A DNA stretch of 64,000 nt from Podarcis bocagei (Eukaryota), in assembly GCA_964188305.1 (NCBI GenBank), contig OZ076895.1; one strand, written 5' to 3'. The translations under genes and the position numbers were made by a program. Of this stretch, positions 3,604-60,790 are shown one piece after another. The notes beneath the pieces are model-generated. The model did not search any database. It saw nothing but the letters and a program-made list of their open reading frames with translations, and was not told where the DNA came from. Every line of letters starts with the position of its first letter. Within the stretch, counting starts at the first letter, position 1.

Positions 3604-5904
3604 TAAAGGTAAAAGATGAGGCAAACTTAATTTTAAATATGGAATCCATGGAGGGAGGGAAGGAGGTCCGAAGGTTCAAAAGAACCTTGTATTTAAATGT
3701 TTGAAAAGGTTATGTTTTATATGTATGAAATTATCAAAAACCTAAAAAAAAATATTATTTTTAAAAAAGACCCCTAAAGAGTGGAATAGCCCTTGGATTG
3801 GAAATAGAAACCTAACATGCAGTTCCCCACCCAGTTAAGAAATTATAGCTGGATGTGAATGAAGTATGTAGCAACAAACGCTATATTTTCATGAGGACAT
3901 TTTTTGCCCTGCATTGTGTTAGTGCTCACAATTTAATACAAAAATAGGAAACTTATATGCAGTGTAGAACTTTGAACTGGGCTTGCATCAACAAAAATAT
4001 TGTGATTAATGACAGCTTTGCTCTTTAAGTGATACGTGTAACAGAGAAAGATCAATTGTGAGACTTCTAGTATAGTCCCAAGAGAAATCTGATGACTTTT
4101 AATAACGCATCCCTAAAGTCTGTGTGATAGAAATACTATTGTACATTACTTAAATCATAGCACAAAAAGGGAAAGGTAGGGAAAGATTCATTAGTTGCCC
4201 AAGAGAATACCAAAGTCTTAATTATGCCAGACAAAAATTGTTATATGAAGTGAAAGATTAGGAACTGTTTAATATATGCAGGCAGTGAGGCACCTTGTTT
4301 AGCATACTAATTGAATGTCATCTTAGTATTTAAGGGACAAGGGGGAAAGAGGCAATTATATTTTACTTTATTTCTCAGTGGGGGCAAATTGTAACAAAAT
4401 CTGGATTTACATAATCTGAATAGAGGAGGTATGCATTCTGTTCCAGATTTAAAAGACTATGCCTGTAGGGTCTTCCTTTTGGTTTATCCCCAGTTAATAA
4501 AAATGTCTCCTGACTCGAAAATAAAAATGCACAGAAAAATAAAAATGAAAACATTCCACAAATATTGGTGCAAAGCAACATGTGCTACAATGCCCAGAAC
4601 ACTTAAATTAATTCACTTCCACTTAAAACGCTCCTTGTTTTATTAAATACAATAAGTGTAAGACAAGGGATGTCAGCTTGAATACAGACTTAACTGAAGC
4701 ACTCTGTGCAAGTAAGAGAGGTGAAGAACACATTGTTGAGGCTTCCAAAAAGCTGCTCAGCTTGCCATCTGTGGCAAGTAAGAACTATTTCCTAGTGAGC
4801 AAGTGAACTTTCACAAGCTAGGGGTCTTGTTTGTTTCATGCTGTCAGTAACTAACACATGTGTGTGCTATGTGGGTTTTATCTGCAAGGTTGTGTTAACA
4901 GAGCAAATATGAGATTCACTGAATACTGGAAAGAAATTAGGGGATAGTGAAGGTAACTAGGTGCACTTTCATTTCAATTCCTGACTGAATTTGAGGAAGC
5001 AGCAGCTCTGGTGGGAAATAAAGAATAGCCCGGAAATAGAGAGCAAAAAGAAATAAAAAATTGTCAAGACTGGTAGTGCTGGTGGTCTTTTGCAGAATAA
5101 TTTGGAGGTCCAATGACACCTTTTGTTACTAGTGAAGCGCATAGCTTCCTATGACTGTTATGTGCAATTTCTTTTGTTCTGTTTCTATGGTATCATTTGT
5201 TTGTGTTCTTAAAGGTGTTGTAGGACACTCTGTGTAACAATTGATTAACAAGTTGAAATGGTGATGGTGGTGATAATTTCAAAACAAATATTTATCTGAG
5301 TGTACATTTATATCTATATAAAACTATATCTATATACAAAACTCAGGCTCATGAGTTCCCCATCTTCTCTGGCACCACCACAAAGAAGAGATTGGATGCT
5401 TTTGTTTCTGTTTCTATCTATCCACTCTTTGCCACTGTGTCCAAACCCTGACAAACTGTGGTTATTCTTAACTATGGCTTATGGAAACAAAGCGAGCTTC
5501 AAACAGTAGTATGGAAGTATGGCTCTTATGTTACACAAAACTATAGTTTAGCATTATCTCATAACTTGTGTAGCTCATGTCTGGGTTTCATCATTCAGTC
5601 TCATTGTCAGCTACTGTGAAAGAGAAATACCTGCATGGGAAATAACTCTGCAGTTCCCTCTAATCTTATCATACCAGTAAACCTCCATCTGTTTACAGAT
5701 GTTAACACTGTGGATATAAGACTGGCCCATGTGTGACTGATCTTATATCAAAATGTCAATGAATTAACCAGATCTCTAGTGTATTTAAGTGTGAAGATAA
5801 AAGGGAGGCAAAGGGATAGTTTATTGTTGTTGAGTATACATATAATCATACTGTATTCATACTGTTTCTGTGTCAGAACTGTCATGGAATGCAACTTTTT
5901 AGAC

Positions 5905-6043
5905 CAGGTGTGGGGAAACCTTTGGCCCCCCAGATGTTGCTGAAGTACAACTCCCATCAGCATCCACAAGCATGGCTATTTCCCAGGGATTATGGGAGTT
6001 GTACGTCAACAACATCTGGAAAGCCAAAGGTTTCCCGCAGCTG
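5905..6043. mobile_element. Palindromic hAT-type MITE
   Basis: CAG..GGGAAACCTTTGGC..CCAGATGTTG..TACAACTCCCAT pairs with ATGGGAGTTGTA..CAACATCTGG..GCCAAAGGTTTCCC..CTG. Degenerate 8-bp TSD. Confidence 0.75.
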
Positions 6044-7132
6044 ATCTAAACAATGACCTAAATATTTTATAGCCTAACTTATGCATGAAGAAATCCAACT
6101 GTATGAGAAATCCAAATGTAAAAAGATATATTTTATAATTTGCATATATCTATATCTATGTATATAAATGAAGGATGCTCCTTCAACATGTGTCTGGGCA
6201 GATCAAGAACATCTTCCATTTTTGTACTAAGAGCCCAGGCACCTTGATCTAATTTGTAAGTGTTTGTTAACAGAGTCAATTTCTATTTATTTCGCTTGAA
6301 TTGTTCCTTATGGACCCAGACACCCAATCAACACCAAGCTTAGTTAATTGGCTTCACTAGAATAAAAAAAAAGTAATTTAGCAGAATCAACAGCTAAAAC
6401 GGAGATGCAAAATGAAATCCAAAGTTAATCAATTTCAACAAGGAAGAGAGAAATCGTTTAGACCATAGGAGCTCTGCAATCCTATAACCTCCAGAGCATG
6501 AACAAATCATGATCAAAATGAGGGCCCTGAACTCAGCTTAGATTGTCTTTTATAAAGGTATCCACATTCAGCAGATAAAGAAGAGCACATAGTTACTAAG
6601 ATTTTGCATAAACTAACATTTATTCTGATACCTATTTTGGTATATGCAGTACTTATCAGATAGATGAGCCATTGCATATGGCATGACAAAAGGGAAACAA
6701 CAATTAGAATACCAGACTTATTTTCTAGATTTCCTAGATAGAAATTATATGAACTGGCTCTGTTCAAATTACATGGTAAGTCATAAACTATGTCTTACCA
6801 TGAATGGACAGCATGCTAGTGCATGCTCTTGAATTGTTACCATTTCACCCTTTACTCCCTATAGCCAAGAGAAACCACAAACCTTGACTTATCATGATGT
6901 GTGAACCAACATTAATAGTTTCTACCAAATCAACCATGACTGGTAAGCCAAGGACAAACCTTGGATTATTATCATGGTTTGCAGAGAAACAAGTTGTGAG
7001 TGCTGATATACTCGTCATGGTAACTCCAGCCTGATGGTTTGTTTCTCTTGGCTCCAAGAAGGATGGAGCAATGCAGGAATCATTCATCAGCATGGATTTA
7101 TTCCTTAACTGTGCTGTGTCAATATGGGCGGA

Positions 7133-7154
7133 CACACACACACACACACACACA
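7133..7154. repeat. (AC)n microsatellite
   Basis: Direct inspection. Confidence 0.9.
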
Positions 7155-7779
7155 AATACACAGACACTGGCTTGGATCCAAAGATGTCTTGCACAAGTGG
7201 TCTTTTGCTTCTATAAGGTAGCCTAGTCAAATTCTACAAATTCCCTTGACCTGCTGCAGTCTCCCATGCCCCATCACATTGCAGTCCAAAGGGTCCAACA
7301 GCTGTCAGGAATGGCTTCTCAGAGAAAGGAAGCTGTAGTAGGGGAATGATGATGAACTGTCACAACCCCATGCCAACCTGGTGCATATTCATGTGTTCTT
7401 TTCAAGTAGGGCAGCCATCCATGCAATATGGTAGGCTGGTTATTATAGACTCCCCGAATTATATTCAACTGGCCTGCAACTAGACCTATTTTTTGAGTTT
7501 CAGGAACATCTACCGATCAGTCAAGTTTCTTAGGTATCCTGTTTTTCTTTCTGAAGCACCCCCACCGCCGCAACCAAAGAAAAGGCCTGCTGAAATCGAT
7601 TCACTCTGAAAGGCACTAAAGTTGCACAGTTTAAGAAATATTTTGTAGACGTTAATCCATCAATTTGCAAATGTGGTAAATTAGTATTGACTAGGGTGAG
7701 TCGGACTATTACTGTTGTTTAGACCCATTGCTTATGTTTGTTTTAAAGGTATCTGATTGTTTAATATTGCATTGGCTTT

Positions 7780-8004
7780 GACTATCTAGAAAACAACACA
7801 TGCAAACCTTGGCTGACAAAAGGAACCACGGACCAGTTTCACAAGTAGTGCTAAGCCATAGTTTACCTAAACCAAGGTTTATAAAACAACAAACCATGGC
7901 TTACAAGCTTAGTGTGTTTGTGATTAACAAACTATATTTAAGATGCTGGGTTGGGTTTGGATAATTGAATTAAACCATGGCTTGGGTTATGTGCAAACCA
8001 GGCC
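7780..8004. repeat. Degenerate interspersed repeat rich in AAACCATGG motifs (MITE-like; similar patches near 5430-5570, 6780-7040, 30910-31250)
   Basis: Recurrent AAACCA(T/A)(G/A)G(C/T)TT motifs and a ...ATGTGCAAACCAGGCC end. Family not assignable by eye. Confidence 0.35.
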
Positions 8005-8544
8005 ACTGTGTCACCATTTGCAAGTCTAAAGCAGCCCTTCTTTTTATGTCGACCACCCAGTGATCAACTTATACAACTACACTGTAAGTGTCAGAAACCC
8101 CACTGCTGTTACTATGGATTTCCAAGTCTTCACACTCAGCACATGCTTACAAGGCAGAAGTTGACAGAATGTATTACTAAGCCATTTAGGGGCATCTTCA
8201 TGAATTCCTGTGCATCTTGTATGCCTTCTTCCTGCAACATCTGCAGCAAAACTTCTGCCAAGTGTATTACTCTGCTTTCCTTTGGTCCACAGCAGCAAGA
8301 CCAAGTGGGTGGTCGTGTCATCTGAGCAGCCCAAGACCTCCATACACACTGCCCAGGCTTGTGTCCCAAAGAGCTCACTTTGGTGTTGCTAATGCAGCAA
8401 AAACAATACAGGTGGCAGCAGTTACTGGTTTCTGCAGCCACAGCAGGCACCAGTGGTTTGACTTCACTCCCAGAGGCACATGCCATTGTCACCTGAGACA
8501 GACAGATGCCAAAAACAGCTGCAACAACTACTTGCACATGAGCC

Positions 8545-8798
8545 TAATAATAATAATAATAATTTATTTGCACCCTGCCCATCTGGCTGAATTTCTCCAG
8601 ACACTCTGGGCGGCTCCCAATCGAGTGTTAAAAACAATACAGCATTAAATATTAAAAACTTCCCTAAACATAGGATAGCTGCTTATTTCCTTGACATCTG
8701 ATGGGAGGGCGTTCCACAGGGCAGGCGCCACTACTGAGAAGGACCTCTGTCTGGTTCCCTGTAACCTCACTTCTCGCAATGAGGGAACAGCCAGAAGC
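8545..8798 (-). mobile_element. L2 3' fragment with (TTA)n tail
   Basis: Reverse complement matches the ORF end (VAPALWNALP) and 3' stem-loop of the intact L2. Confidence 0.85.
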
Positions 8799-11595
8799 CA
8801 CACCTGAATTTCCTAATTTATCACCTCATATTTATGATAAGTAAGGAAAACCATGTGTATTTGAAGAGGGATAGCTAATTGTGACCAGTAGTGGTAGGCA
8901 CAAATGATGAACAAAGTGTCAAAATACCACATAGATGATTTATCAAAATTACACCTGAAGGACAGGCATTCAGGTGCACTTAGAGGAATGAAGTTACATA
9001 CAGGAAAAAATGTATGTAACTAATGATCTGAAACCTGAGTATATTCAGCCTTGCTCTCTTTCCTATTACCTTTTAATATTAAAATAAAGCCCCTATGCTC
9101 CAACTTACATTTATACCATTAAGCTGACTAACATATGAATTATTCTAGCAGGTGGGCTTGTGTGGTTTTAAGAGCAATGCAACACAATCAACTGCATAAT
9201 ATCATATTTCCAGGACAGAAAAGGCCCAAGCAAGCCTAATTTTAACATTAAACTACTCAAGTTCCCATAGGGACCATTATTTCGTTTGACCCCAAGAATT
9301 AATTGAAGCCTTAAAACAAAATAGATTACCTATTTAATGCAGCTGAGTTGGACTTTAGCCTTTGTATGGCATGTCCGAATGCCAAGCCAATTAATCTGTG
9401 TTACCCTTATACTTTCTTCTTAAAATGAAGTGCCAAAAAAGGAAAACATACACCAAACAAACACTTCATGCAATCTTAAAAAATTAGACTGATAATCATT
9501 TTAAATCATACTAATTCTCCCTTTTGAAAGTGAAATGAAAAGACTGATAAATTGTTTTCCTTTGGTAAAGGGCCAAACATATGGTTTCCTTACTTTGAAT
9601 CAAGCACACCTGGCCAAATAAATCACACCAATACTGAAAACCAAATTTATTTCACAATTTCATATACGATGCACATTCTGGGTAGACAATGCAAGAACGA
9701 CCATGATACCAATAAGTAGAAGAGAGAACTAAACTGTCAAACTTTAAACCTGAAGGCTAAAAATGTCAATCTACAGTAAAAGTAGCAACATTTTTAAAGT
9801 AGGAACCAGCTGGCCAGACCAGTGAGACAAAAGCCACTGGGCATATTCCTTGAAATTCATGGAAAACAGATGGTGCAAGTGACTTAATATTAACAAGTTA
9901 GCACTAAATTGTTAATAATAGGTCTAACTGGAGTTATTGTTCTTTGAAAGCACCAAACACATTGTAATCGAAGAGTTAAACAGACCCACTATTTGAACTT
10001 TTATTTTTGCATGAAACCTTAGTTCAAATAAAATACAACACCCATGAGCATTTATCTTCTCAAGCTTAGAATTGTCCAAAGCTTTCTACAGGGAGTTAGT
10101 TCAACTACCTTACTGTGTAGTGAGCAAGGAAGAAGAAGAAGAGATTTGTGGGGCCATGTGCAAGCCTAGCTTCAGTCCTTTTCAATAATTATGGTAAGTG
10201 GAAGTACGAATAATTTGTTTGTCCCTTTCCCAGTTTGTTTAGAAGAAGTCGGTTCAGGGAATCTAGTCAATGTACAATGGCAGCTACCTAGAACATTAAA
10301 TCTCAAGTCCTGAAGATCACACCTGACTAAGAATAACCTTGCTATATTAAAATATATAGTTCTTTAGGTTCTTTGTCACAAGAAAATAAAATGAATGTCC
10401 AACTTGCATAATATAAACCCTTTTCAGACATTCAGCTGAATGTAGGTTGTGGGCACTATGGGATCATGGTCACAAGCAGTTTGCTGACTAAACACACACA
10501 TTTGCAGATATAAACAGAGCCATATGGTAGCCAGAAGATTATGATGGTTTTATATCAACTGGTTGCCCATCTGTGTGCTAATCCTGACAAACTCCTTACT
10601 AGTCTAGGTCAGGACCAAGCGAAAGACTGCTTTAAGCCCATAGGAACTTACCAAGCCCTTCAATCAGCTTTGGGTGCCCTGTTTCAATGGGCTGTAGACT
10701 GGAAGAAAGGTCTTGGGCAAGGAGCAAACTATTAAATGCAAGCTCGCTCTCCCGAGGCGATTGGCCCAAAGCAGGCCACATGGGGAGGAAGAAATGCCCC
10801 CTCACCCTCCAAAGAAAGCCACATTCCTTCCTCCTTGGGGTGGAGAAAACCCACTCACAAATGAAAGTAAGGTGTGACCTTTTCAGTGGTGGTAGTGGTA
10901 TTGGGACAATTCTGGAGATTCCCTCTTGGGAAGATCCAGCAGGCCCTCTTTTTTTAATCACTTCTAGATATGATCTTAAGATTATTTTATTTCAACAGGC
11001 ATTCAGAGTTTGAAATTTGTCTTGCCTGATTCATCTGCTACTGCTTTTTTAGTCTGAGTTTTACGTATTGATCTTTTGTTGCTTTAAATTGGTTTTATTG
11101 ACTGTACAGCACTTTGGATACACAAATATAGGAAAGTGGTTTATACATAATCTAAAAAAAACCAAAACAGTGCAGACATCTAGGCTTCTCTCTGTCTATT
11201 CAAGGAGCCTGGTACCTCCCCCCCCCCAAAAAAAAACCTTCTGTGGAAGACATTACACACATACATTTGTACACATGTATGGGTCTAGTTGCCCATGTGA
11301 ATGTACATTTATAGGTCATCGGGGATGAGGTCTGTTTCCATAATCCTCGTCTATGAACTTTGAAAGTATGAAGAGGGAATAATACATTCCCTAAACTTTA
11401 AAAAAATTAATTTAACAGAAAAACAGAAATTTGTACCGTGGGCAGAACAATAAGGTCTCAGTGTCTCATATATAATGGCCAATATAAATAATCTTGAATG
11501 AAACTGCAGGAATCGAATGGGGAGTTACAAATAATCTAATCACCTTGATGGTGAAAATGCTGAATTTTCTTTTCAAATGTTTGCTTTGTACTCAC

Positions 11596-27871: not shown

Positions 27872-28535
27872 CCCCGCCCTCCCTGGCCAGGGCCAGGCTC
27901 AGGGTGGCTACAACCAAATATAAATTACAATAAAATGTAATGGGGGGGGGACAGTAAATTAAAATACGACTTAAAATACAGTTTAAAATGCAGTCTCATT
28001 TTAGTAGTAGCCCATAAATCAAGACCATAAAGGGAGGAAACACCAGGTATTCACCCAAGCCAGCTATCCATGCTGGTCCTACATGGGAAAATTTATATAG
28101 CAAATCCCATATAAGGGGTCAGAGCGAGTCCAAGCCGAAGGCCAAGCAGACCAGCTCCATCTTGCAGGTCCTGTGGAAAGATGTCAAATCCCGCAGGGCC
28201 CTGGTCTCTTGTGACAGAGCGTTCCACCAAGTCGGGGCCAGTGCTGAAAAGGCCCTGGACCTAGTTGAGACCAATCTAAGCTCCTTGAGGCTCGGGACTA
28301 CACTACACTACACTTGATCTTAGCCAAAAGGGGACCTCCAAAGTGTTGTTATTTATGGACCTTAAGGTCCTCCGTGGGGCATACTAGAAGAGGCGGTCCC
28401 ATAGGCGCGAGGGTCCTAAGCCACATAGGGCTTTAAAGGTCAAAACCAGCACCTTAAACCTGACCCTGTACTCCACCGGGAGCCAGTGCAGTTGGTAAAG
28501 CACTGGATGAATGTGATCCCACAGCAAGGACCCCA
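27812..28535 (-). mobile_element. L2 3' fragment of a different subfamily, with (TTTA)n tail
   Basis: Encodes DHIHPVLYQLHWLPVEYRVRFKVLVLTFKALCGLGP. 3' hairpin at 27874-27908 and (AAAT)n at 27816-27864. Confidence 0.88.
28299..28331 (-). pseudogene. U2 snRNA 5' fragment retrocopy (about nt 13-37) with slipped GTAGT repeats
   Basis: Minus strand reads CCTTTTGGCTAAGATCAAGTGTAGT-GTAGT-GTAGT, 25 nt identical to vertebrate U2. Flanked by GGGAC direct repeats at 28294-98 and 28331-35. Confidence 0.85.
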
Positions 28536-29917
28536 TAAGGGGTCCTTTACTTCGCTTTGCTTTGCAAAGTAAAATTGCTAAGATGCTAGTATGGGACAAG
28601 CTTCTTTAGACCACAGAAGTATTTCATATTTCCTTTAATTAGTGCATTTAAATGAAAAAAGAAAGACTTCACAACCAAAACTACATGGGAAAGAGTGCTT
28701 CCTATGATACCATATACACAATAAAGTTAAACAAACACAACTGCAGCATTATCTAAAGTGTTTAAGATTGAAAGAACAGCACGATTGGCTTCAAATACCT
28801 GAAGGGGGATTTGGTCTTCTGTTTCGTGAATGGCAGGCCCTCGTGTCAGGCTGTTTTTGAAACTTACATTTTCAACCACTGTTTGCAATACAGCCTGGGA
28901 ATCGGCTGTTGAAAGAGGGAAATCCCACTGGCCATAAGCAACGCCTTGGGCTTGCCTAAGGTAGCTGTTTGGATCCCAAGCAAAAAGGTGTATGAACAAC
29001 AATAGATTTCTGTCAACGTACACATCTCAGAGTACTCAAAACACTCAATAAATGTACTTTTGAAATATTTAGATGTGGAGAAAACGTAGAGATAGCCACT
29101 TAAATGTCAGTTTCAATCTATTGGAGGAAATGAATCCCCTCCCTCATTTTATCTGAATGGCTTTTCAGAAAATGGGACATGGCAATAACGTCCAAATTAG
29201 CACATTATGTTTGGGCAAGAGAATATGTGATGTATTGAAAAATGAACACTTTTTATGTCTCTTTGGAATGAGTAATTTGGCAACGTTGTGAGACCTTATT
29301 CATTGCTTTTGCTAAATAGTGGATTGTAATATTTGATTGTAAGTGAGAAACATCAAATCTGGCAGGCCCAGACATGTGAAATAGTAGCTTTCACAATATG
29401 CACTCAACAAGTGGCCAAAACTAAATTACAGTCAATGGGTTCCAAATCTAAGTCAAAATGTACAATGAGGATGAGAAGAAGGATAGGGAACCTGTGGCCT
29501 TCCAGATGTTGCTCCCATCTTTCATCACCTCTAGACAGCAATGGGAATGGGTCTGGAAACTGGAATCCAACAGCATCTGAAGAGCAATAGGCTCCCCACT
29601 CGCTGGATTACAGGAATGGGAGCTATGTGTGTACCTAATACACAATGGAAAACAAACATTAAAAAAATATATGTAATGAGCATTGTTGGATTTCCTCTGT
29701 AATACTCTATATGCTCCTATTTCACAAACACACTTGGGGTTGAGAAATGGAATACTGGGTGGAGTTGAATTACGACTGGGCAGGTACTTGTCCTTGTGTT
29801 ACAGATGCATTTACTCTAAACAGGGACAAACACAACAAATGCCCAATCTGGATGACTGCCTACAGAAGACACTGATGAAACCACTTCCAAAGGTGCTCAG
29901 CTAATTAAACCACAGTA

Positions 29918-32147: not shown

Positions 32148-34065
32148 TACAGATATCTACTGAGGGTACCAGCCAAAATCAGCAACCAGAAGCACTAAAT
32201 GCAATAGCCAGTGGAACAGCTTATTCTGTCACTGGGGAAGATACTGTTCAATATAAAGGGGCTCTCAGCTGAACAGTTTTGATGAGCACCATTCACCTAT
32301 AAGTTTTAGAAGATTAGAAATAAATGCAATATGACCACTAAATCTCCTCTTTTTTGTTTGTTATTAAACTTTTATGGGCATCAAATTCCTAGACCATGAC
32401 AGATTAGGTTTGGTGTTATACATCATCCTGCACCACCTTTCCTAATCCTCACCACCTTTTCCTCACCACCTTTTCATAGCATGCTATAAAGTACAGTGGC
32501 AAAACATAAATAAAGATGTACAACACACATCAACTAGGTTCAGTTGCGCTGCAACATCCGCTACTTTCATTAGGGCTTGTGTCAATTCCCCTGAAACCAG
32601 CAGCTAAAGCATCTCTTTTCTCACGTCTGAAGCTCCTCAAAACAAAAAACAGTCTAATATTGTAGATACTAGTTTTCAAGGTGAATCACATCAGTTGCTT
32701 CTGTTCTCTGTCAAAAGTACTTGAAAACCTCTTATCTTCCCTTGAGCACTTGACTGATATTAATAATCATCAACACTTCTGTGACGCACTGAAGAAGTAC
32801 CTGCACTTCGCAAAGTAATTTTCAATAAATCACCATGGGGAGGTGCCTCAAAAGGCAGGATGTCATTGTGTGAGCCTGAATTCACTGCCTTCAAGTTGCA
32901 AAATCTCCTGGGGTGGGGTGAGGGAATCAGTGCAGAGCCGAATCATCATTTCAAATTTGCATATCACAGTGAACTGTTAATCCCACAGCATATTCAAGTA
33001 CATATTAGGCATTTGTGTTGCTCTGGCCTTCTGGAATGTACTGTTCAGCATTCTGAGTTCTACTACCATCGAGTGTAGAAAACATTTTTTAAAAACCTAG
33101 TTGAAAGCATCATTATTTCTGGGTGCTCAGGAAACAAAGCCCTTGGAATATCTTGTGCCCTGCAAAGCAAAAGGTATAAAACTGTATACACTTTTCTGGA
33201 ATACACTTTAATTTTATCTGCGTCTGGAATTTTATGTAATATGAGAAATCTGTCAGCATCTCTTAGATTAATTCTGTTACTGCAAGCCAAGGTTTTAACT
33301 CGCCAAAATAAATGCTCTTATAACTCATTTCTTAATAAATAAATGTTTTCTACAAGCTCAAGTTCCAAAATTAATCTGTTTTATGCATTCATTTTACATA
33401 CAAGCAAATATCTGCAATTGCTCATGCTAGCTCAAGTCTGACAACCAATATTTCTTATAACGTCCATAAGGTATACTTTTTTGCATTAGCAATGTCATGA
33501 ATATAGTTTGTTCAATGTCACTGTTCAATTTATTTCAAGAATTTAGGAATCACTACCAATGGGAGTTGGTATACACTAGTCAATTGTTCCACAAGTCTGA
33601 AATTCATTTTAGTAATACGAAAATAGATTTTACAAGAACTTTTGACAATGTGGTTGTAACAGCTTTCTTCAATCAAATGCAACTTATATGGTTGACACCA
33701 AAATGTATTGCTATGATCCCTATGATTTCTTCCTAGATTCATTGGTTCATATATGATATGCACAAAAGGACATGAAGGTGTTGACAAAATGTATTTCAAA
33801 ATCTGAGAGGCATTTGAGAGCACCCTGGGCAAAGAGACTAGAATGTGTTTATTTAATTGGAACCAATGGCCTGATCCTACAACTTACTACACCAGGAAAA
33901 AAGCAATTAGAATATATCATTATAACATCACAGCATAAGCTGTGCACGGGTCTTGCTGTGCAAATGACAGCTGATGTATGTATGCAAATAAAAATGGTTT
34001 TCCCAGGAGAAGCAAGTGGAGCCTGGCCAAGTGTTTAGAATTTGCTTTCCTATAGGATGTAAGAT

Positions 34066-34908
34066 ATCTGGCCCGGGGCGGGGCCTGGGGCCTCACAAGG
34101 ACTGCGTGCTGCTTGCTGCCTGCTGCCCAGGAAGACTCCCTGAGTGAGTGCCTGAGGGCCCTGCTCTTGCCACTTACCATCTGGCCTGGGGCGGGGCCTG
34201 AAGCCTCATAAGGACTGCGTGCTGCTTGCGGCCTGCTGCCCAGGAAGACTCCCTGAGTGAGTGCCTGAGGGCCCTGCTCTTGCCACTTACCATCTGGCCT
34301 GGGGCGGGGCCTGAAGCCTCATAAGGACTGCGTGCTGCTTGCGGCCTGCTGCCCAGGAAGACTCCCTGAGTGAGTGCCTGAGGGCCCTGCTCTTGCCACT
34401 TACCATCTGGCCTGGGGCGGGGCCTGGGGCCTCACAAGGACTGCGTGCTGCTTGCGGCCTGCTGCCCAGGAAGACTCCCTGAGTGAGTGCCTGAGGGCCC
34501 TGCTCTTGCCACTTACCATCTGGCCTGGGGCGGGGCCTGAAGCCTCATAAGGACTGCGTGCTGCTTGCGGCCTGCTGCCCAGGAAGACTCCCTGAGTGAG
34601 TGCTTGTGGGCCCTGCTTTTGCCACTTACCATCTGGCTTGGGGCGGGGCCTGGGGCCTCACAAGGACTGCGTGCTGCTTGCGGCCTGCTGCCCAGGAAGA
34701 CTCCCTGAGTGAGTGCTTGTGGGCCCTGCTTTTGCCACTTACCATCTGGCCTGGGGCGGGGCCTGAAGCCTCACAAGGACTGCGTGCTGCTTGCTGCTTG
34801 CTGCCTGCTGCCCAGGAGGAGTCCCCTGAGTGAGTGCCTGAGGGCCCTGCTCCTCCCTGCCACTTACCACCTGGCCCGGGGCGGGGCCTGACAGGCCTCA
34901 CTAGGACA
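34066..34908 (+). repeat. Tandem array of 113-bp GC-rich monomers (7 full units plus a degenerate partial unit)
   Basis: Units start at 34066, 34179, 34292, 34405, 34518, 34631, 34744 (unit 7 is 125 bp) and a partial at 34869. Each has GGGGCGGGGC, CTGAGTGAGT and CCACTTACC. Confidence 0.97.
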
Positions 34909-35169
34909 GTTGTTACTGCCGGAGAGGCACAGAGTGTTTTTAAAATGTTTTTAAAAATTTTCTTTGGATTTTTTGTATGTGGGGGGTGGGGGTGGGATGG
35001 ATGTTTGGTTGGGCTTGGGGAATTATTTTTTTTTTATTTTGATGTTTTTGTAATTTTTACATTTTTTTTGTTTGTATTGTTTTATTGGTTTTGTTTGTTT
35101 GTTTAAGGTGTTATTTTGTTTTTAGGGGGAGGGTTCAGGGCTGCCGGGGAGTGGGCCCCAGCCCACAAA

Positions 35170-38100
35170 ATGGCTGGGGCATGTTCCACAGGGGGGGATG
35201 CACTGGGACAACCGATCTCAGTGATCACGGGTAGGAGGAGGAGTTACGCTAAGACCAGACCATGTCATTACAGAGGAGGCAGGTTTAGTCGTTGTCTGAG
35301 GACTATCCCTGCCTCCGGGTCTGGTCCTGTCCGGATGGATACTAGAATCAGCAAGGGATACCCACGTGACCTGAAGGTGCTGCTGTGCAATGCCAGGTCA
35401 ATGATTCGTAAGACCACTGCCATCCATGACTTGATCATGGATGGAGGATTTGACCTGGCATGTGTAACAGAGACTTGGTTGGATGAAGCAGATGGGCCTG
35501 TCCTTGCCGCTGCTTGTCCACCAGGTTTCTCTTACGCACAGCAACCCAGGTCACGTGGGCGGGGAGGGGGGGTTGCAGTGATTTTTAGGAAGTCATTAGT
35601 TTGCACCAGGCGTCCTATTGGGAAGACCCAGTTTTCTGAGTGCATGTTCTGGAAGTTGGGCAATAGGGGCAGTACAGGATTCCTTTTGGTGTACCGACCT
35701 CCCCGCTGCACCAAGGATTCCCTGCCCGAGCTGCTTCAGGTCGTGGCGGATGTTCTCCTGGAGACACCCAGCCTGGTCGTCCTAGGGGATTTTAACATCC
35801 ATGCCGACACGGCCTTACAAGGGGCCGCTCGGGACTTCGTGGAAAGCATGGCCTCCATGGGGCTGTCCCTGAATAAGTCTGGCCCAACCCATAGCCGTGG
35901 ACATGCCTTGGACCTGGTGTTTACCTCTATGGATGTTGGTGATCTGACACTAAGTAAAAGCGAAATGAAAGAAGTGCCATGGTCAGATCACTTCCTGGTG
36001 CAACTGGACTTCTCTGCGACCCATCCCCTCTGCAGGGAGGTGGGACCAATTCGGATGGTCCGCCCCCGCCACTTAATGGATCCAAATGGTTTCCAGAGAG
36101 TGGTAGGGGATGCTTTATCCCATGTTGATGGCCTTTCAGCCGATTCCCTGGTGGCCCGCTGGAATGTGGAGTTAACCAGGGCTATTGACTGTTTGGCTCC
36201 GAAGCACCCTCTCCGATTGCATGGAGCCCGGACAGCCCCGTGGTTTTCCACGGATCTGAGGGCAATGAAACAATCGTTGAGACGGCTAGAGCGCCGGTGG
36301 CGGATAACTCATTCCGAATCTGACCGGACACAGGTTAGAGCTCAACGTCGAGCCTACCAAGTGGCGATAGCGACGGCGAAGAAGAATTTCTTCACCGCCT
36401 CTATTGCATCTGCAGAAAACAGCAGCAGGAGACTTTTTCAGGTGGTTCACAATTTAGCGGAACCACCTGCAACATCGGGGCCCAGTACGGGCCACATGTT
36501 CTCCTGCAATGATTTTGCAAAGTTTTTTGCAGATAAAATCGCCCAGATTCGGGAAGAAGTAGACTCCACCGTGGGAGCAGGGCCGGGGCGGGAGAGTGCT
36601 AGAGTTCTGTCTAGTCAAGTTGAGTGGGATCAATTTCAACCTGTTACCTCCGAGGATGTGGACAGGCTGCTTGGACGAGTGAAACCAACCACCTGTCTCC
36701 TGGATCCTTGCCCATCCTGGCTTATAAAAGCTAGCCGGGAAGGACTGGGCGATGGGCTTCGTGGGGTGGTGAATGCTTCCCTCCGTGAGGGAGCCTTCCC
36801 AGACCCGCTGAAAGAGGCGGTTATTAAACCGCTTCTTAAAAAACCATCTTTAGATGCGGCCACGATGGCCAACTATCGCCCAGTCTCAAATCTTCCATTC
36901 CTGGGCAAGGTGATTGAGCGAGTGGTTGCTGAACAACTCCAGGCACGCCTGGAAGAAGCGGACCATTTGGATCCCTTCCAGTCGGGATTCAGGCCTCATC
37001 ATGGGACTGAAACTGCCTTGGTCGCACTGGTTGATGATCTCCGGCGGGCTAGGGACAAAGGTGAGAGCTGTTTCCTAGTTCTGCTGGATCTCTCAGCGGC
37101 GTTTGATACCATCGACCATAGCATCCTTCTGGACCGTCTTGAGGGGCTGGGAGCTGGGGGCACTGTTATACAGTGGTTCCGCTCCTTCCTCCTGGGCCGT
37201 GTTCAGAAAGTGGTGGTGGGGGATGAGTGTTCAGACCCTTGGGCCCTCACTTGTGGGGTGCCTCAGGGTTCTGTCCTCTCCCCCATGCTTTTTAACATCT
37301 ATATGAAGCCGCTGGGAGAGATCATCAGGAGGTTTGGGCTGGGTGTTCATCAGTATGCGGATGACACCCAGCTCTACCTCTCTTTTAAATCAGAACCAGT
37401 GAAGGCGGTGAAGGTCCTGTGTGAGTGTCTGGAGGCGGTTGGAGGATGGATGGCGGCTAACAGATTGAGGTTGAATCCTGACAAGACAGAAGTACTGTTT
37501 TTGGGGGACAGGAGGCGGGCAGGTGTGGAGGATTCCCTGGTCCTGAATGGGGTAACTGTGCCCCTGAAGGACCAGGTGCGCAGCCTGGGAGTCATTTTGG
37601 ACTCACAGCTGTCCATGGAGGCACAGGTCAAATCTGTGTCCAGGGCAGCTGTTTACCAACTCCATCTGGTACGTAGGCTGAGACCCTATCTGCCTGCGGA
37701 CTGTCTCGCCAGAGTGGTGCATGCTCTGGTTATCTCCCGCTTGGACTACTGCAATGCGCTCTACGTGGGGCTACCTTTGAAGGTGACGCGGAAACTACAA
37801 CTAATCCAGAATGCGGCAGCTAGACTGGTGACTGGGAGCGGCCGCCGAGACCATATAACACCGGTCTTGAAAGACCTGCATTGGCTCCCAGTACGTTTCC
37901 GAGCACAATTCAAAGTGTTGGTGCTGACCTTTAAAGCCCTAAACGGCCTCGGTCCAGTATACCTGAAGGAGCGTCTCCACCCCCATCAGTCTGCCCGGAC
38001 GCTGAGGTCCAGCGCCGAGGGCCTTCTGGCGGTTCCCTCACTGCGAGAAGCAAAGCTACAGGGAACCAGGCAGAGGGCCTTCTCGGTAGTGGCGCCCGCC

Positions 38101-38202
38101 CTGTGGAACGCCCTTCCAGCAGATGTCAAAGCGATAAACAACTACCTGACATTCAGGAGACATCTTAAGGCAGCCCTGTTCAGGGAAGTTTTTAACGTGT
38201 GA
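35170..38202 (+). CDS. L2 LINE protein: APE endonuclease plus reverse transcriptase (1010 aa from the first ATG)
   Basis: APE motifs CNARS, VTETW, GRGGGV, VYRPP, GDFNIH, LDLVF, SDH. RT motifs NYRPVSNLPFLGK, QSGFR, LLDLSAAFDT, GVPQGSVLSP, YADDTQLY, LNPDKTE. L2-type C-terminus SRLDYCN...LHWLPV..R.QFK. First ATG at 35170 (the track starts at TTG 35116). No stops or frameshifts. Confidence 0.95.
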   Translation: MAGACSTGGDALGQPISVITGRRRSYAKTRPCHYRGGRFSRCLRTIPASGSGPVRMDTRISKGYPRDLKVLLCNARSMIRKTTAIHDLIMDGGFDLACVTETWLDEADGPVLAAACPPGFSYAQQPRSRGRGGGVAVIFRKSLVCTRRPIGKTQFSECMFWKLGNRGSTGFLLVYRPPRCTKDSLPELLQVVADVLLETPSLVVLGDFNIHADTALQGAARDFVESMASMGLSLNKSGPTHSRGHALDLVFTSMDVGDLTLSKSEMKEVPWSDHFLVQLDFSATHPLCREVGPIRMVRPRHLMDPNGFQRVVGDALSHVDGLSADSLVARWNVELTRAIDCLAPKHPLRLHGARTAPWFSTDLRAMKQSLRRLERRWRITHSESDRTQVRAQRRAYQVAIATAKKNFFTASIASAENSSRRLFQVVHNLAEPPATSGPSTGHMFSCNDFAKFFADKIAQIREEVDSTVGAGPGRESARVLSSQVEWDQFQPVTSEDVDRLLGRVKPTTCLLDPCPSWLIKASREGLGDGLRGVVNASLREGAFPDPLKEAVIKPLLKKPSLDAATMANYRPVSNLPFLGKVIERVVAEQLQARLEEADHLDPFQSGFRPHHGTETALVALVDDLRRARDKGESCFLVLLDLSAAFDTIDHSILLDRLEGLGAGGTVIQWFRSFLLGRVQKVVVGDECSDPWALTCGVPQGSVLSPMLFNIYMKPLGEIIRRFGLGVHQYADDTQLYLSFKSEPVKAVKVLCECLEAVGGWMAANRLRLNPDKTEVLFLGDRRRAGVEDSLVLNGVTVPLKDQVRSLGVILDSQLSMEAQVKSVSRAAVYQLHLVRRLRPYLPADCLARVVHALVISRLDYCNALYVGLPLKVTRKLQLIQNAAARLVTGSGRRDHITPVLKDLHWLPVRFRAQFKVLVLTFKALNGLGPVYLKERLHPHQSARTLRSSAEGLLAVPSLREAKLQGTRQRAFSVVAPALWNALPADVKAINNYLTFRRHLKAALFREVFNV

Positions 38203-38233
38203 CATTTTACTGTATTTCTGGTTTTTATGGAAG

Positions 38234-38272
38234 CCGCCCAGAGTGGCTGGGGAGGCCCAGCCAGATGGGCGG
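38234..38272 (+). other. L2 3' UTR stem-loop (probable RT recognition element)
   Basis: CCGCCCA(38234-40) pairs with TGGGCGG(38266-72); inner stem TGGCTGGG-GAGG-CCCAGCCA(38244-63). It sits just before the (TTA)n tail. Confidence 0.75.
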
Positions 38273-38286
38273 GGTATAAATAATAA

Positions 38287-38330
<44 letters not shown>
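38287..38330 (+). repeat. (TTA)n microsatellite, 3' tail of the L2
   Basis: About 14 perfect TTA units directly after the L2 3' UTR. Confidence 0.95.
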
Positions 38331-38475
38331 CCGTCTGAAATAAGACAAACAATGAAATTTAGAGGTATGTACAGCCAATACTGTCCACAATCCTATATTA
38401 ATTTACGCCAATTGTCTGAACTTAAGCTCTTAAGATGAACTGCAAACCATTGTTCAAACATTCAAAAGAAAGTTG

Positions 38476-38520
38476 CAGCCAGATGGGTGGAGTATAAACA
38501 ATACTATTACTAATAATTTT
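38476..38520 (+). mobile_element. Tiny L2 3' terminal remnant
   Basis: CAGCCAGATGGGTGGAGTATAAACAATACTATTACTAATAAT resembles 38258-38300. Confidence 0.55.
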
Positions 38521-39135
38521 ACTTAAGGAAGAGTTCACCTTAATTAACCACAGCCACTCTTCTCCTGATCCTACTAAAAACAAAAACAAAGAAAGCCACT
38601 GTTAAACGGTGTGACTCAACTAATTTGGAGTTATTTAAATATAACATTAACTAACCCCCCAAACCCTGAGTATATCAGAAAAGCAAATGGGCAAACATGC
38701 AGAGGTGATCTTCCCAATCTTTACTCTGCAGCTTCCGCTCAGTTAATGACTGGCAGATTCCCTGCCAACTTGGGGTCAAACAGACTGGCCTTTGCATATG
38801 AGAATTTTAGGCAGCAGCACAATATTCCTTTCAGCTGGTACTCTTGGGTATCCTTTCCTTCCCCGAAAGTGAGCAAAACTGTGTGTTATGCATTTTGGAG
38901 TAGCTCATTTTCACTTTGCTCACGAACTACATAAATATGAAATGGCGCTCTACCTGCCCTGTCGATCGGAAGGGCTATATTCCTATTTTATTTCTGTTTC
39001 TCAAGTAATCCTGAACCTAACAGTATTCTGCAGAACTTCTCCAATTGTTCTCAGAGCTCACTTTCAAAAAAAGTCTTCAGTTTATTTAACCTTTTTAATG
39101 AGAACTCCTAGAAAATTAAGTTCCAAAAATAACGT

Positions 39136-39966: not shown

Positions 39967-40574
39967 CTCTAAGCTTTGCTCAGGCATCCCTACATATGGG
40001 AATGGGAACACGGTCATTAGCCCCAGCTAGTGCTCCCGAGGGCCGGCCCTCCCCACTTCTCATTTTCTGGGGCTGAGTTTCTGCAGCAAGTTGGCTGATC
40101 TAATCATGCAGGTAACCTTGCACATTCAGGGGTGCCTCGTCTGCTGCACTTCAGCCTGAACGGACCGAGGGCTACAGGGGTGGGCCATTGGGAAAGCAAA
40201 AGAGAGAATGGCGAGAGGGGAAGCATTCCTATCTTATCCATCTTTATCGCAAGCTCTCTGTCTCACTTAGGAAAGCAGGCTAGAGGCATGTGTGTTATTT
40301 GTACCTTACAAAGAGTAGCTCTTTTAGTCTCACCTTTCCGGTAACTATCAATAAGCGGGGGGGGGGGGGAGGGCAGCAGAGAAAAAGACTTGTCCTCATG
40401 ACCACAAAGATAACCTAGTTGTTGGCTAAAGTGGTATATTTCCTTCATTTCAGATCTCGGCATTCCTACAAAGTTCGGATCTCTCCCTCATGTCCCATTT
40501 AAACCCCACCCCTTCAGATAAATAAATATATAAATGCAGGCCCAAATATATTCCTATGTCAAGGAGATAAAGAA

Positions 40575-40731
40575 CTACCTACGGTAACTTTTAGAAGACA
40601 TCTGAAGGCAGCCCAGTATTGGGAAGTTTCTTTTAATGTTTGATATTTTACTACGTTTTATATATGCTGTAAGCTGCCCAGGGGTATGGGCGGGGTATAC
40701 ATAATAATAAAATTATTATTAATTATTATTT
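40575..40731 (+). mobile_element. L2 3' fragment
   Basis: ACTTTTAGAAGACATCTGAAGGCAGCC (TFRRHLKAA)...ATGGGCGGGGTATA..TAATAA..TTATTATT. Confidence 0.8.
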
Positions 40732-45866: not shown

Positions 45867-46185
45867 AGTAATAATAATAATCATTTTATTATTTATATGC
45901 CACCCATCTGACTGGGCTGCCCTAGCCACTCTGGGAGGCTCCCAACAAAATGTAATAAAACATAAACCATTTAAAAAATTCCCAATACTGTGCTGCATTC
46001 AGATGTCTTCTAAAAGTCATATAGTTATTTATCTGTTTTACATTTGATGGGAGGGCATTCCACAGGGCAGGTTCCCTGTAACTTCACTTCTTGCAGTGGG
46101 GAAACTGCCAGAAGGCCCCCATAGCTGGGTCTCAGTGTCTGGGCTGGGTGATGGGGGTGGAGATGCTCCTTCAGCTATACAGGGC
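45867..46185 (-). mobile_element. L2 3' fragment with (TTA)n-like tail
   Basis: Reverse complement matches the L2 3' hairpin and ORF end (LWNALP; HLHPHHP). Confidence 0.8.
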
Positions 46186-46420: not shown

Positions 46421-46570
46421 AATAAATAACAACAACAACAACAACAACAATTTATTATTTGTACCCCGCCCATCTGGCTGGGTTTTCCCAGCCACTCTGA
46501 GCTGCTTCAGAATAAGATTAAGAATACATTAAAATGTCACACATTAAAAACTCCCCTGATGTCTTCTAAA
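46421..46570 (-). mobile_element. L2 3' fragment with (TTG)n tail
   Basis: (AAC)n at 46428-46450 followed by the reverse complement of the L2 hairpin (loop AAAA) and ORF end. Confidence 0.8.
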
Positions 46571-59739: not shown

Positions 59740-60790
59740 TTGTGGGAAGGTGTTCCCACAGATAAGGAGCCACAGAGGGGGAGTCACAATGGAAAAGGCC
59801 CTCCCTTCAGCTGCTACAAAGTTGACTTCAGCAGACCAGACAGGCTTCATCTGAAAACCTCAACATACAGGTAAGAGTATATTGGGGGAAAGTATATACA
59901 GGTTCCAAATTTTGAAAATTTCATAAACAGATATAAGTACCTTAAGATTGAGCTCGATAGCAAATTGACAGCCTGTTCTTTCAGAAGAGATATCATATGC
60001 ACATGCTAGGTCCCTCCTGTTAGTGCCCCTAACGACTGCATTGTGCACTGAAAGAACTAATGTTACTGTGATGTGCTCTACCTGGTAGCTCCACACAGGG
60101 CACCTTACAATAATCAAATATTCAGTTTATCTATGTATGGAACAGCCTATGCCTGTCCAGAAATGGCCTTACCTGCAACACCAGTCAAAGATGGGGAAAG
60201 AAAGCTTTGAACCTTTGGTGATGAAGGCTGTGTTCTTTGTTCTTCAGAAGGTATGCAGACCTGATCAGATCAGGCTGCTATCCTAACTCCTGGAAACAGA
60301 AACCATCCATCCACAGCCCCTCCATCATATTGGGCTTCAGTTTCTAATTTCAACTTATTGGCTCTTATCCAGTCCACCACTCATTGAAGCACCAATTCAG
60401 AACATGCACAGCCATACTCAGCTCAACTGTAACAGAGGAACAGAGCTGGGTATCATCTGCATACTGATGACACTCTGCCCCAAATCCATTCCCTATCACT
60501 TCATACAGATGTTAAACAACAGTGGGGGAAAGAAGATGGAGCCTTGTGGCACCTTCACAGCATAACTTCCAGGGGGTCAAAATGTAGTCACCTAATGATA
60601 CTCTCAGGTACAAGTCTCATAGGCAGGAATAGACCTCCTGCCTCTTGTTCCAAACCTGCAGAGACAGTCCAGCATGATACCATGGTTGATGGTATCAAAA
60701 GCCATGGAGAGAACCAAGTAAAGCAAGAAGGGTCACATTCCCTCTGGCCCACCCCATACAAAAGGTCATCCAATTTGTATAATCTTCCTC
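59740..60790 (-). mobile_element. Old, internally deleted L2 RT and C-terminal fragment
   Basis: Minus strand encodes AFDTINHG, VPQGSI...LFNI and CHQYADDTQL (about 60440-60700), with degraded C-terminal remnants down to about 59740. Confidence 0.75.

Follow-up and report, generated by a model that had tools for sequence, protein, structure and literature searches.

The question raised by this locus is whether a stack of GC-box monomers and the long open reading frame (ORF) that follows it form one mobile element, and what part the stack plays in that element. The locus occupies positions 34066-38330 of the window, by which we mean the whole 64,000-nucleotide stretch of Podarcis bocagei DNA that was analysed (assembly GCA_964188305.1, contig OZ076895.1). 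An earlier note on this DNA had described it as a compact long interspersed nuclear element (LINE) of the L2 clade, about 4.3 kb long, in which monomers stand at the 5' end and ORF1 is missing. The array, the spacer, the ORF, the hairpin and the tail, from 34066/34069 to 38328/38331, are one insertion. On balance, the element is probably a recently inserted, full-length and coding-intact Podarcis L2 whose GC-box monomers would act as its promoter. The coordinates of its parts are collected in Table 1.

A single insertion with an intact ORF

The contigs from three DNA runs, together with the raw reads from an RNA run, were placed on positions 33300-39100. In organism D (run X6), a contig of 2407 bp matches 33300-34068 and then 38339-38620 with 7 letters between the two matches, which is exactly the number of letters that the window has between the shared 'ATC' and 38339 (CGTCTGA, 38332-38338). 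A contig of 328 bp from organism B (run X4; depth 122.9) matches 33873-34068; the same depth of 122.9 recurs in this run at 38406 and 38437, and the 58 letters left to the contig end fit an empty site. Since the site is empty in organisms B and D, the array, the ORF and the tail arrived together. The two empty sites also contradict the proposal of an old insertion fixed across Podarcis species. The presence of 'ATC' at both junctions implies either a target-site duplication of 0-3 bp or microhomology at the junctions, nothing longer than this 3-bp overlap having been found as a duplication at the element junctions.

The alternative that the array is an unrelated minisatellite adjoining a 5'-truncated L2 draws on the adjacency of the two and on the lack of a clear target-site duplication bracketing the unit. 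It is ruled out by the empty-site contigs of two organisms, in which array and L2 are missing together, and by a homologous array found at the same place on an independent copy, L002, which lies on another chromosome (P. muralis); the array is, furthermore, highly repeated in three organisms. We attach next to no probability to it.

The ORF runs without interruption, with a TTG at 35116 as alternative upstream start. Pfam identifies Exo_endo_phos (E 4e-13), Exo_endo_phos_2 and RVT_1 (E 4e-37) in its product. The endonuclease motifs CNARS, TETW, GDFN and SDH are found at ORF residues 73, 100, 206 and 272, respectively, while DLSAAFD, GVPQGS, YADD and NPDKT of the reverse transcriptase (RT) side are at residues 640, 696, 729 and 769. 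The catalytic residues (N73, E101, D207/N209, S272-D-H, D640, YADD 729) are all intact. The ratio of observed to expected CpG (CpG o/e) is 0.53 in the ORF vs 0.26 in the window, and the GC content, 34-38% in the flanks, rises to 61-63% over the array and is 53-56% over the ORF; the array taken by itself has 66% GC. Upstream, the GC box GGGGCGGGG is invariant in every unit when the array is split into monomers and aligned, and this word has 7 occurrences in the window, all within the array, vs 0 expected from a pattern count.

The ORF listing holds no plus-strand ORF of at least 100 aa between 34066 and 35116. The insertion begins inside the array, so that no ORF1 lies upstream of it. An ORF1 preceding the array, which the earlier note had raised as the possible hallmark of longer copies, is ruled out: the two full-length copies that were compared, the window copy and L002, both start within the array, and neither of them has one. 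The description given in that note of an intact 1010-aa endonuclease-RT ORF with all catalytic motifs, of a compact single-ORF L2 without ORF1, and of seven 113-bp GC-box monomers is therefore borne out by the ORF listing, the domain and motif assignments, the alignments and the repeat analysis.

The full-length alignment of the ORF with AAD19348 (P0160; 1027 aa) is colinear and shows 39% identity over 986 aa (E = 0), covering residues 54 to 1008 of the window ORF; in the RT domain identity reaches 51.6%. AAD19348 has been named as Maui (PMC2653535), an element of the L2 clade (PMC3381678) that is regarded as a canonical L2 (PMC13343379). The closest proteins are from Podarcis muralis, namely P0001 (97%), the representative of a 90% cluster with 76 members, and P0243 (98%), likewise 1010 aa long. 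Next come relatives from Varanus (50-58%) and Anolis (54%; P0008, full length). Fish relatives, at about 39-40% identity, are found on contigs of 3.4-4 kb, and one fish cluster includes AAD19348. Exact-protein look-ups returned no record identical to the window ORF or to P0001.

Membership in another clade of single-ORF, microsatellite-tailed LINEs with an apurinic/apyrimidinic (AP) endonuclease, such as RTE/BovB or CR1, is very improbable. The Pfam domains do not separate these clades, an Rfam scan of 33500-38900 at E<=1 detected no UnaL2 3' element (its sole match was a chance IsrM), and one Varanus relative carries the automatic name 'Craniofacial development protein 2', a label that presumably traces to a BovB-derived endonuclease. 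These points are outweighed by the end-to-end colinearity with Maui, by the RT identity of 51.6%, which exceeds the highest closest-match similarity between superfamilies (48%; PMC13343379), and by the 55% GC of the ORF, GC-rich ORFs of about 55% having been reported for lizard L2 (PMC7140322). On these three grounds the L2 assignment is accepted, and by sequence similarity the element is a single-ORF LINE of the L2 clade.

A young insertion with an intact ORF is a fair candidate for an active copy, its mobility itself being predicted. The copy may instead be structurally intact but dead or fully silenced, the recent insertion of a family that has since become immobile, which we consider possible though rather unlikely. 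Its mobility is read from sequence, the protein differs by 2-3% of residues from those of P. muralis, and the array RNA of the subfamily, described below, stems from a minority variant. Conversely, the reading frame is open over 1010 codons and keeps every catalytic motif, two other organisms lack the insertion, and the CpG o/e of the ORF is twice the background; among the six 113-bp units there are only 0-8 differences in 113 positions, monomers 2 and 3 being identical.

Other copies and turnover of the 5' end

In the three DNA runs the array bins have a summed word depth, which is not a copy number, of about 5,000-450,000 vs 50-126 in most flank bins. The depth in the junction bins (34852-35239) is of the same order as in the array. 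It then climbs several-fold from the spacer bin (35046-35239) to those of the ORF as far as 35627, which means either that many copies stop close to where the ORF begins or that the ORF from there on is common to sister subfamilies whose 5' ends differ.

Four independent Podarcis loci (L001-L004) were obtained by exact look-up of NCBI gene models in the P0001 cluster. L002 (P. muralis, OZ076956.1), which lies within a WD40/RCC1-repeat gene model, is full-length and spans 4897-9452. Its array of 9.8 units of 111 bp (98% matches) is followed by a spacer, an ORF that is now broken and an (ATT)9.7 tail. The other three, L001 and L004 from P. raffonei and L003 from P. muralis, show the ordinary 5' truncation. 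L001 and L004 begin close to the start of the ORF (element positions 1102 and 1192), and L003 is 97.7% identical to the window copy over 1293 bp. An (ATT)n tail ends L002, L003 and L004 alike. The ENA contig L007 holds an internal piece of the ORF only, without the 5' end. The monomer array belongs to the 5' untranslated region (UTR) of this L2 family as an integral part, present in many copies. Its absence from other copies, which the earlier note had named as grounds for refutation, is contradicted by its presence on another long copy, where the number and length of units differ (111 bp x 9.8 vs 113 bp x 7.3 in the window).

A minus-strand ORF of 378 aa runs through the L002 array (4864-6000); as 111 is a multiple of 3, it is an artefact of periodicity and not a gene. 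A metagenome scan with a degenerate monomer pattern gave 0 matches. The L2 copies of Rhineura (L005) and Hemicordylus (L006) have no tandem array within 8 kb upstream, which says little about how widely the array is spread because these are single, possibly truncated copies.

The two full-length copies differ unevenly along their length: the ORF is 95-96% alike, the best monomer match is 82%, and the spacer, in which gaps are many, is down to 69% identity. Units of one and the same array resemble each other at 93-100%. Between the window and L002 arrays the best-conserved stretch is the initial 40 nt of the unit, which includes the GC box and an invariant GGGCGGGG core and is found in the innermost partial unit too; the indels between the two arrays sit mid-unit. 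Monomer 7, the innermost complete unit, resembles the L002 type (AGGAGGA, CTCCT.CCTGCC). The comparison points to units 1-6 as a derived, recently multiplied form and to monomer 7 as the keeper of an older type. The 5' end of the family evolves fast and in concert, with outer units duplicating and the older unit staying beside the spacer, the same pattern as in mouse L1 (PMC5381506).

The remaining L2 fragments of the window (Table 1) are mostly 3' ends with 69-94% nucleotide identity, or matches at the protein level only. Among them, one 94% identical piece is cut by the window start, and some have (GTT)n rather than (ATT)n tails. They are the usual trail of 5'-truncated copies from several L2 subfamilies.

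Table 1. Positions in the window of the L2 element, its parts and the other L2 fragments
Feature	Position	Strand	Description
Whole element	34066-38330	+	4.26 kb: array, spacer, single ORF, 3' UTR hairpin, tail
5' array	34066-34907	+	TRF: period 113, 7.3 copies, 94% matches
Array make-up			Six 113-bp monomers, one 125-bp monomer (34744-34868) and the start of the innermost partial unit (34869-c.34920)
Spacer ('tether') from array to ORF	34908-35169	+	262 nt, T/G-rich (T 121, G 78); from sequence and composition
Single ORF	35170 (ATG)-38202	+	1010 aa and stop, uninterrupted
AP-endonuclease domain	about 35392-36000	+	Pfam
RT domain	about 36838-37596	+	Pfam
3' UTR	38203-38286	+	84 nt; two-step hairpin 38234-38272, then TATAAATAATAAA
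Tail	38287-38330	+	TRF: (ATT)14.7, 100% pure microsatellite
'ATC' junction overlap	34066-34068 and 38329-38331	.	Common to the 5' and 3' junctions
Other L2 fragments	3-119, 8545-8797, 28152-28539, 45869-46183, 46425-46559, 60083-60729	-	
Other L2 fragment	40556-40730	+	

The array as candidate promoter and the 3' module

The GC-box monomers may form an internal RNA polymerase II promoter or regulatory region. A stack of several units would keep the 5' end working after partial 5' loss and would allow it to be rebuilt by unit duplication, the innermost unit keeping the older type. Any LINE must carry its promoter inside its transcript. The position of the array at the extreme 5' end, the conserved GC box of each unit and the modular build are in favour of such a role. 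The 5' end of L002 (CCC/AGGAGGAC, the slash marking the junction here and below) lies downstream of the GC box, at a distance of about 45-55 nt, and of a CATAAG/CACAAG motif, at about 27-35 nt, which is likewise counted for it. Taken together, these features make a promoter role of the array plausible.

Transcription was followed in RNA run X23 (organism D), of which about 12% was read, with reads placed only if at least 90% like the window array. Over the array and the spacer the first mate on the plus strand reaches 6-38x vs 0.5-1x on the other strand. Over the ORF both read classes are present, the class that is scarce over the array not setting in before about 35046-35240. The direction depends on the library chemistry: if the library is first-mate-sense, a continuous sense RNA of about 6-19x extends from the array into the ORF. 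Reads less than 90% like the window array, for example those of the L002 type, are missed, so that the absence of one read class is weak evidence.

Several results weigh against the view that this is a recently inserted L2 with promoter monomers. If X23 was made with dUTP, the commonest chemistry, its array reads are antisense to L2. No pile-ups of RNA read starts are seen in this run on 33300-39100. All its array reads carry A>G at 34133 and an additional C behind 34137, a variant whose share of the DNA word depth in run X6 of the same organism D is only about 3-5%, so that the array RNA comes from a small subset of arrays; it may stem from a subfamily that is active or from a few loci lying within host transcripts. 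The array CpG o/e of 0.24 is at genome background (0.16 in the L002 array) and the array is not a CpG island, unlike mouse L1 monomers; the CpG retention reported in the earlier note holds for the ORF and fails for the array. The 5' ends of the two full-length copies fall in different unit phases, ATC/TGGCC in the window and CCC/AGGAGGAC in L002, and two copies give no common start; the window end may be a truncation joined by microhomology. Finally, in run X1, the best holder and perhaps from the window's own species, no contig spans either junction.

Some of these results feed an alternative in which the array is integral to the element yet is not its sense promoter, the sense start lying in or near the T/G-rich spacer. 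The array could then have arisen incidentally, through slippage or unequal exchange at the 5' end, or could serve as an antisense promoter, as a splice-donor block, as a platform to which host factors bind or as a silencing target. The background CpG o/e of the array, the two 5' ends in different phases, the presence in each unit of GTGAGT on the plus strand and ATG/GTAAGT on the minus strand, and a dUTP chemistry, under which the array reads are antisense and the other class starts only at about 35046-35240, would all fit. However, a sense start downstream of the array would not pass the array on, and the window copy and L002 nevertheless carry 7-10 units. The GC box and the first 40 nt are, moreover, what is most conserved between the diverged arrays, and the 90% threshold misses the more diverged arrays of organism D. 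We therefore hold this alternative to be a minority possibility, to be taken seriously, and retain the array as candidate promoter.

Two features of the 5' region are recorded in addition. Look-alikes of 5' splice sites occur in every monomer across 34066-34907, TGA/GTGAGT on the plus strand and ATG/GTAAGT on the minus strand. The spacer, on inspection of its sequence, holds G-runs and low-complexity T tracts; its sense-strand G-tracts GGGGGGTGGGGGTGGGATGG (window 34975-35000) could form a G-quadruplex, and a similar run is retained in L002 (6098-6130) despite the poor overall conservation of the spacer.

At the other end of the element, the 98-nt stretch 38203-38300 folds with a z-score of -4.2 vs shuffles. 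A 3' module composed of GGAAGCCGCCCAGAGTGGCTGGGG, a loop, CCCAGCCAGATGGGCGGGG, TATAAATAATAAA and (ATT or GTT)n is found in 11 copies from several subfamilies, in the window and at the other loci, and 93% of cells are paired in the hairpin across them. Covariation in these 11 copies is not significant, with one compensatory change and a result no better than shuffles, so that the hairpin rests on conservation and folding energy. With the pure triplet tail, it confirms the 3' end proposed in the earlier note. Many reads and contigs match only from 38228 onwards, in keeping with a 3' module that subfamilies share although their 3' UTRs differ further upstream. The target ends are AT-rich and overlap the tail repeat: ...AGAT ATC/CGT in the window and ...CAA TATG/AAA in L002, with a 'TATG' overlap in the latter.

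Target-primed reverse transcription with recognition of a 3' hairpin is known from work on UnaL2 and ZfL2. The Podarcis element would copy itself in the same manner, its RT recognising, in the way of the 'stringent' L2s of fish, the conserved 3' hairpin and the (AUU)n tail. The tail would anneal to the nicked target, with priming on AT-rich target ends (ATATC in the window, ATATG in L002). Of the 3' UTR deletion mutants of UnaL2 and ZfL2, PMC3880073 shows only that they serve as retrotransposition-defective controls.

Relation to known elements

The existence of active, diverse and GC-rich L2 families in a lizard is established (PMC5389967 and PMC7140322, both citing Novick et al. 2009), and all 17 Anolis L2 families (L2AC01-17) show insertion polymorphism. 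The Podarcis family shares with Anolis L2 the GC-rich endonuclease-RT ORF (about 55%), the many 5'-truncated copies and the recent activity (PMC7140322, PMC5389967). It differs in that most Anolis L2 have a second, AT-rich ORF of unknown domain (PMC7140322), which the Podarcis family is without, and in its array of 7-10 monomers, which was not found described for Anolis L2 in the accessible literature.

Lepidosaur L2s are listed without ORF1 in PMC13343379, where some ORF1(-) CR1-group elements are described to possess, near the 5' UTR, 1-5 copies of a repeating subunit 100-500 bp in length (Fig. 4 legend, 2026); the word 'promoter' is never used in that paper. The single ORF and the species-specific repeated subunit near the 5' UTR are common to those elements and to Podarcis L2, the number of subunits being 1-5 there vs 7.3 and 9.8 units here. 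With active lizard L2s cited since 2009, as these later papers report, and 5' subunits present in PMC13343379, the designation of the locus as an under-described system in the earlier note overstated its novelty. What is new beyond PMC13343379 is that array and body insert as one unit, that the units evolve in concert and that the 5' end diverges several times faster than the ORF.

The fish elements Maui (Takifugu), UnaL2 (eel) and ZfL2-2 (zebrafish) have one ORF of about 1000 aa, as in Podarcis, and likewise end in a 3' stem-loop and then, in place of poly(A), a tail of short tandem repeats. To our knowledge, no monomer array has been reported for fish L2s. The Podarcis 3' end differs from theirs in having no Rfam UnaL2 match and ATT as tail unit, and the fish elements are AT-rich (PMC7140322) whereas the Podarcis ORF is GC-rich. 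ZfL2-2 and UnaL2 retrotranspose in HeLa cells, ZfL2-2 doing so without an ORF1 protein (PMC3880073).

The closest architectural parallel is found in the L1 elements of mouse and rat (A, Tf and Gf monomers with a tether), in which tandem units of about 100-200 bp are followed by a non-repeated spacer before the ORF. The variable number of units, the diverged innermost unit and a 5' UTR that turns over fast in comparison with the coding part are also shared (PMC5381506). The likeness is one of architecture: these elements belong to the L1 clade and not to L2, and the Podarcis element is without ORF1. Promoter activity is proven for L1 monomers, whereas the Podarcis monomers are candidate promoters; mouse L1 monomers are, in addition, CpG islands and the Podarcis units are not (o/e 0.24). 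Lizard L1 5' UTRs have no tandem duplication, and a promoter arms race has been suggested to be specific to mammals (PMC5381506).

Speculatively, and with more doubt than confidence, lacertid L2s could have arrived independently at the solution of mouse L1: a stack of GC-box promoter units that is partly lost at each copying, rebuilt, and quickly replaced by new unit types, of which 113 bp (window copy) and 111 bp (P. muralis L002) would be two. If host repression drives the turnover of units, the arms race regarded as mammal-specific in PMC5381506 would also take place in a reptile and in another LINE clade, and this L2 family could serve to test whether repression drives 5' turnover outside mammals. 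Many LINE families are active side by side in lizard genomes, and little work has been devoted to how they are transcribed. Were the monomers promoters, they would provide a natural non-mammalian counterpart to mouse L1 and a system to address why stacked promoters evolve and how the rate of turnover of the 5' end compares with that of the coding part; the intact, compact 4.26-kb single-ORF copy is a practical starting clone. Set beside the elements above, the Podarcis architecture is a well-documented example of a kind already present in the literature, rather than a new kind of system.

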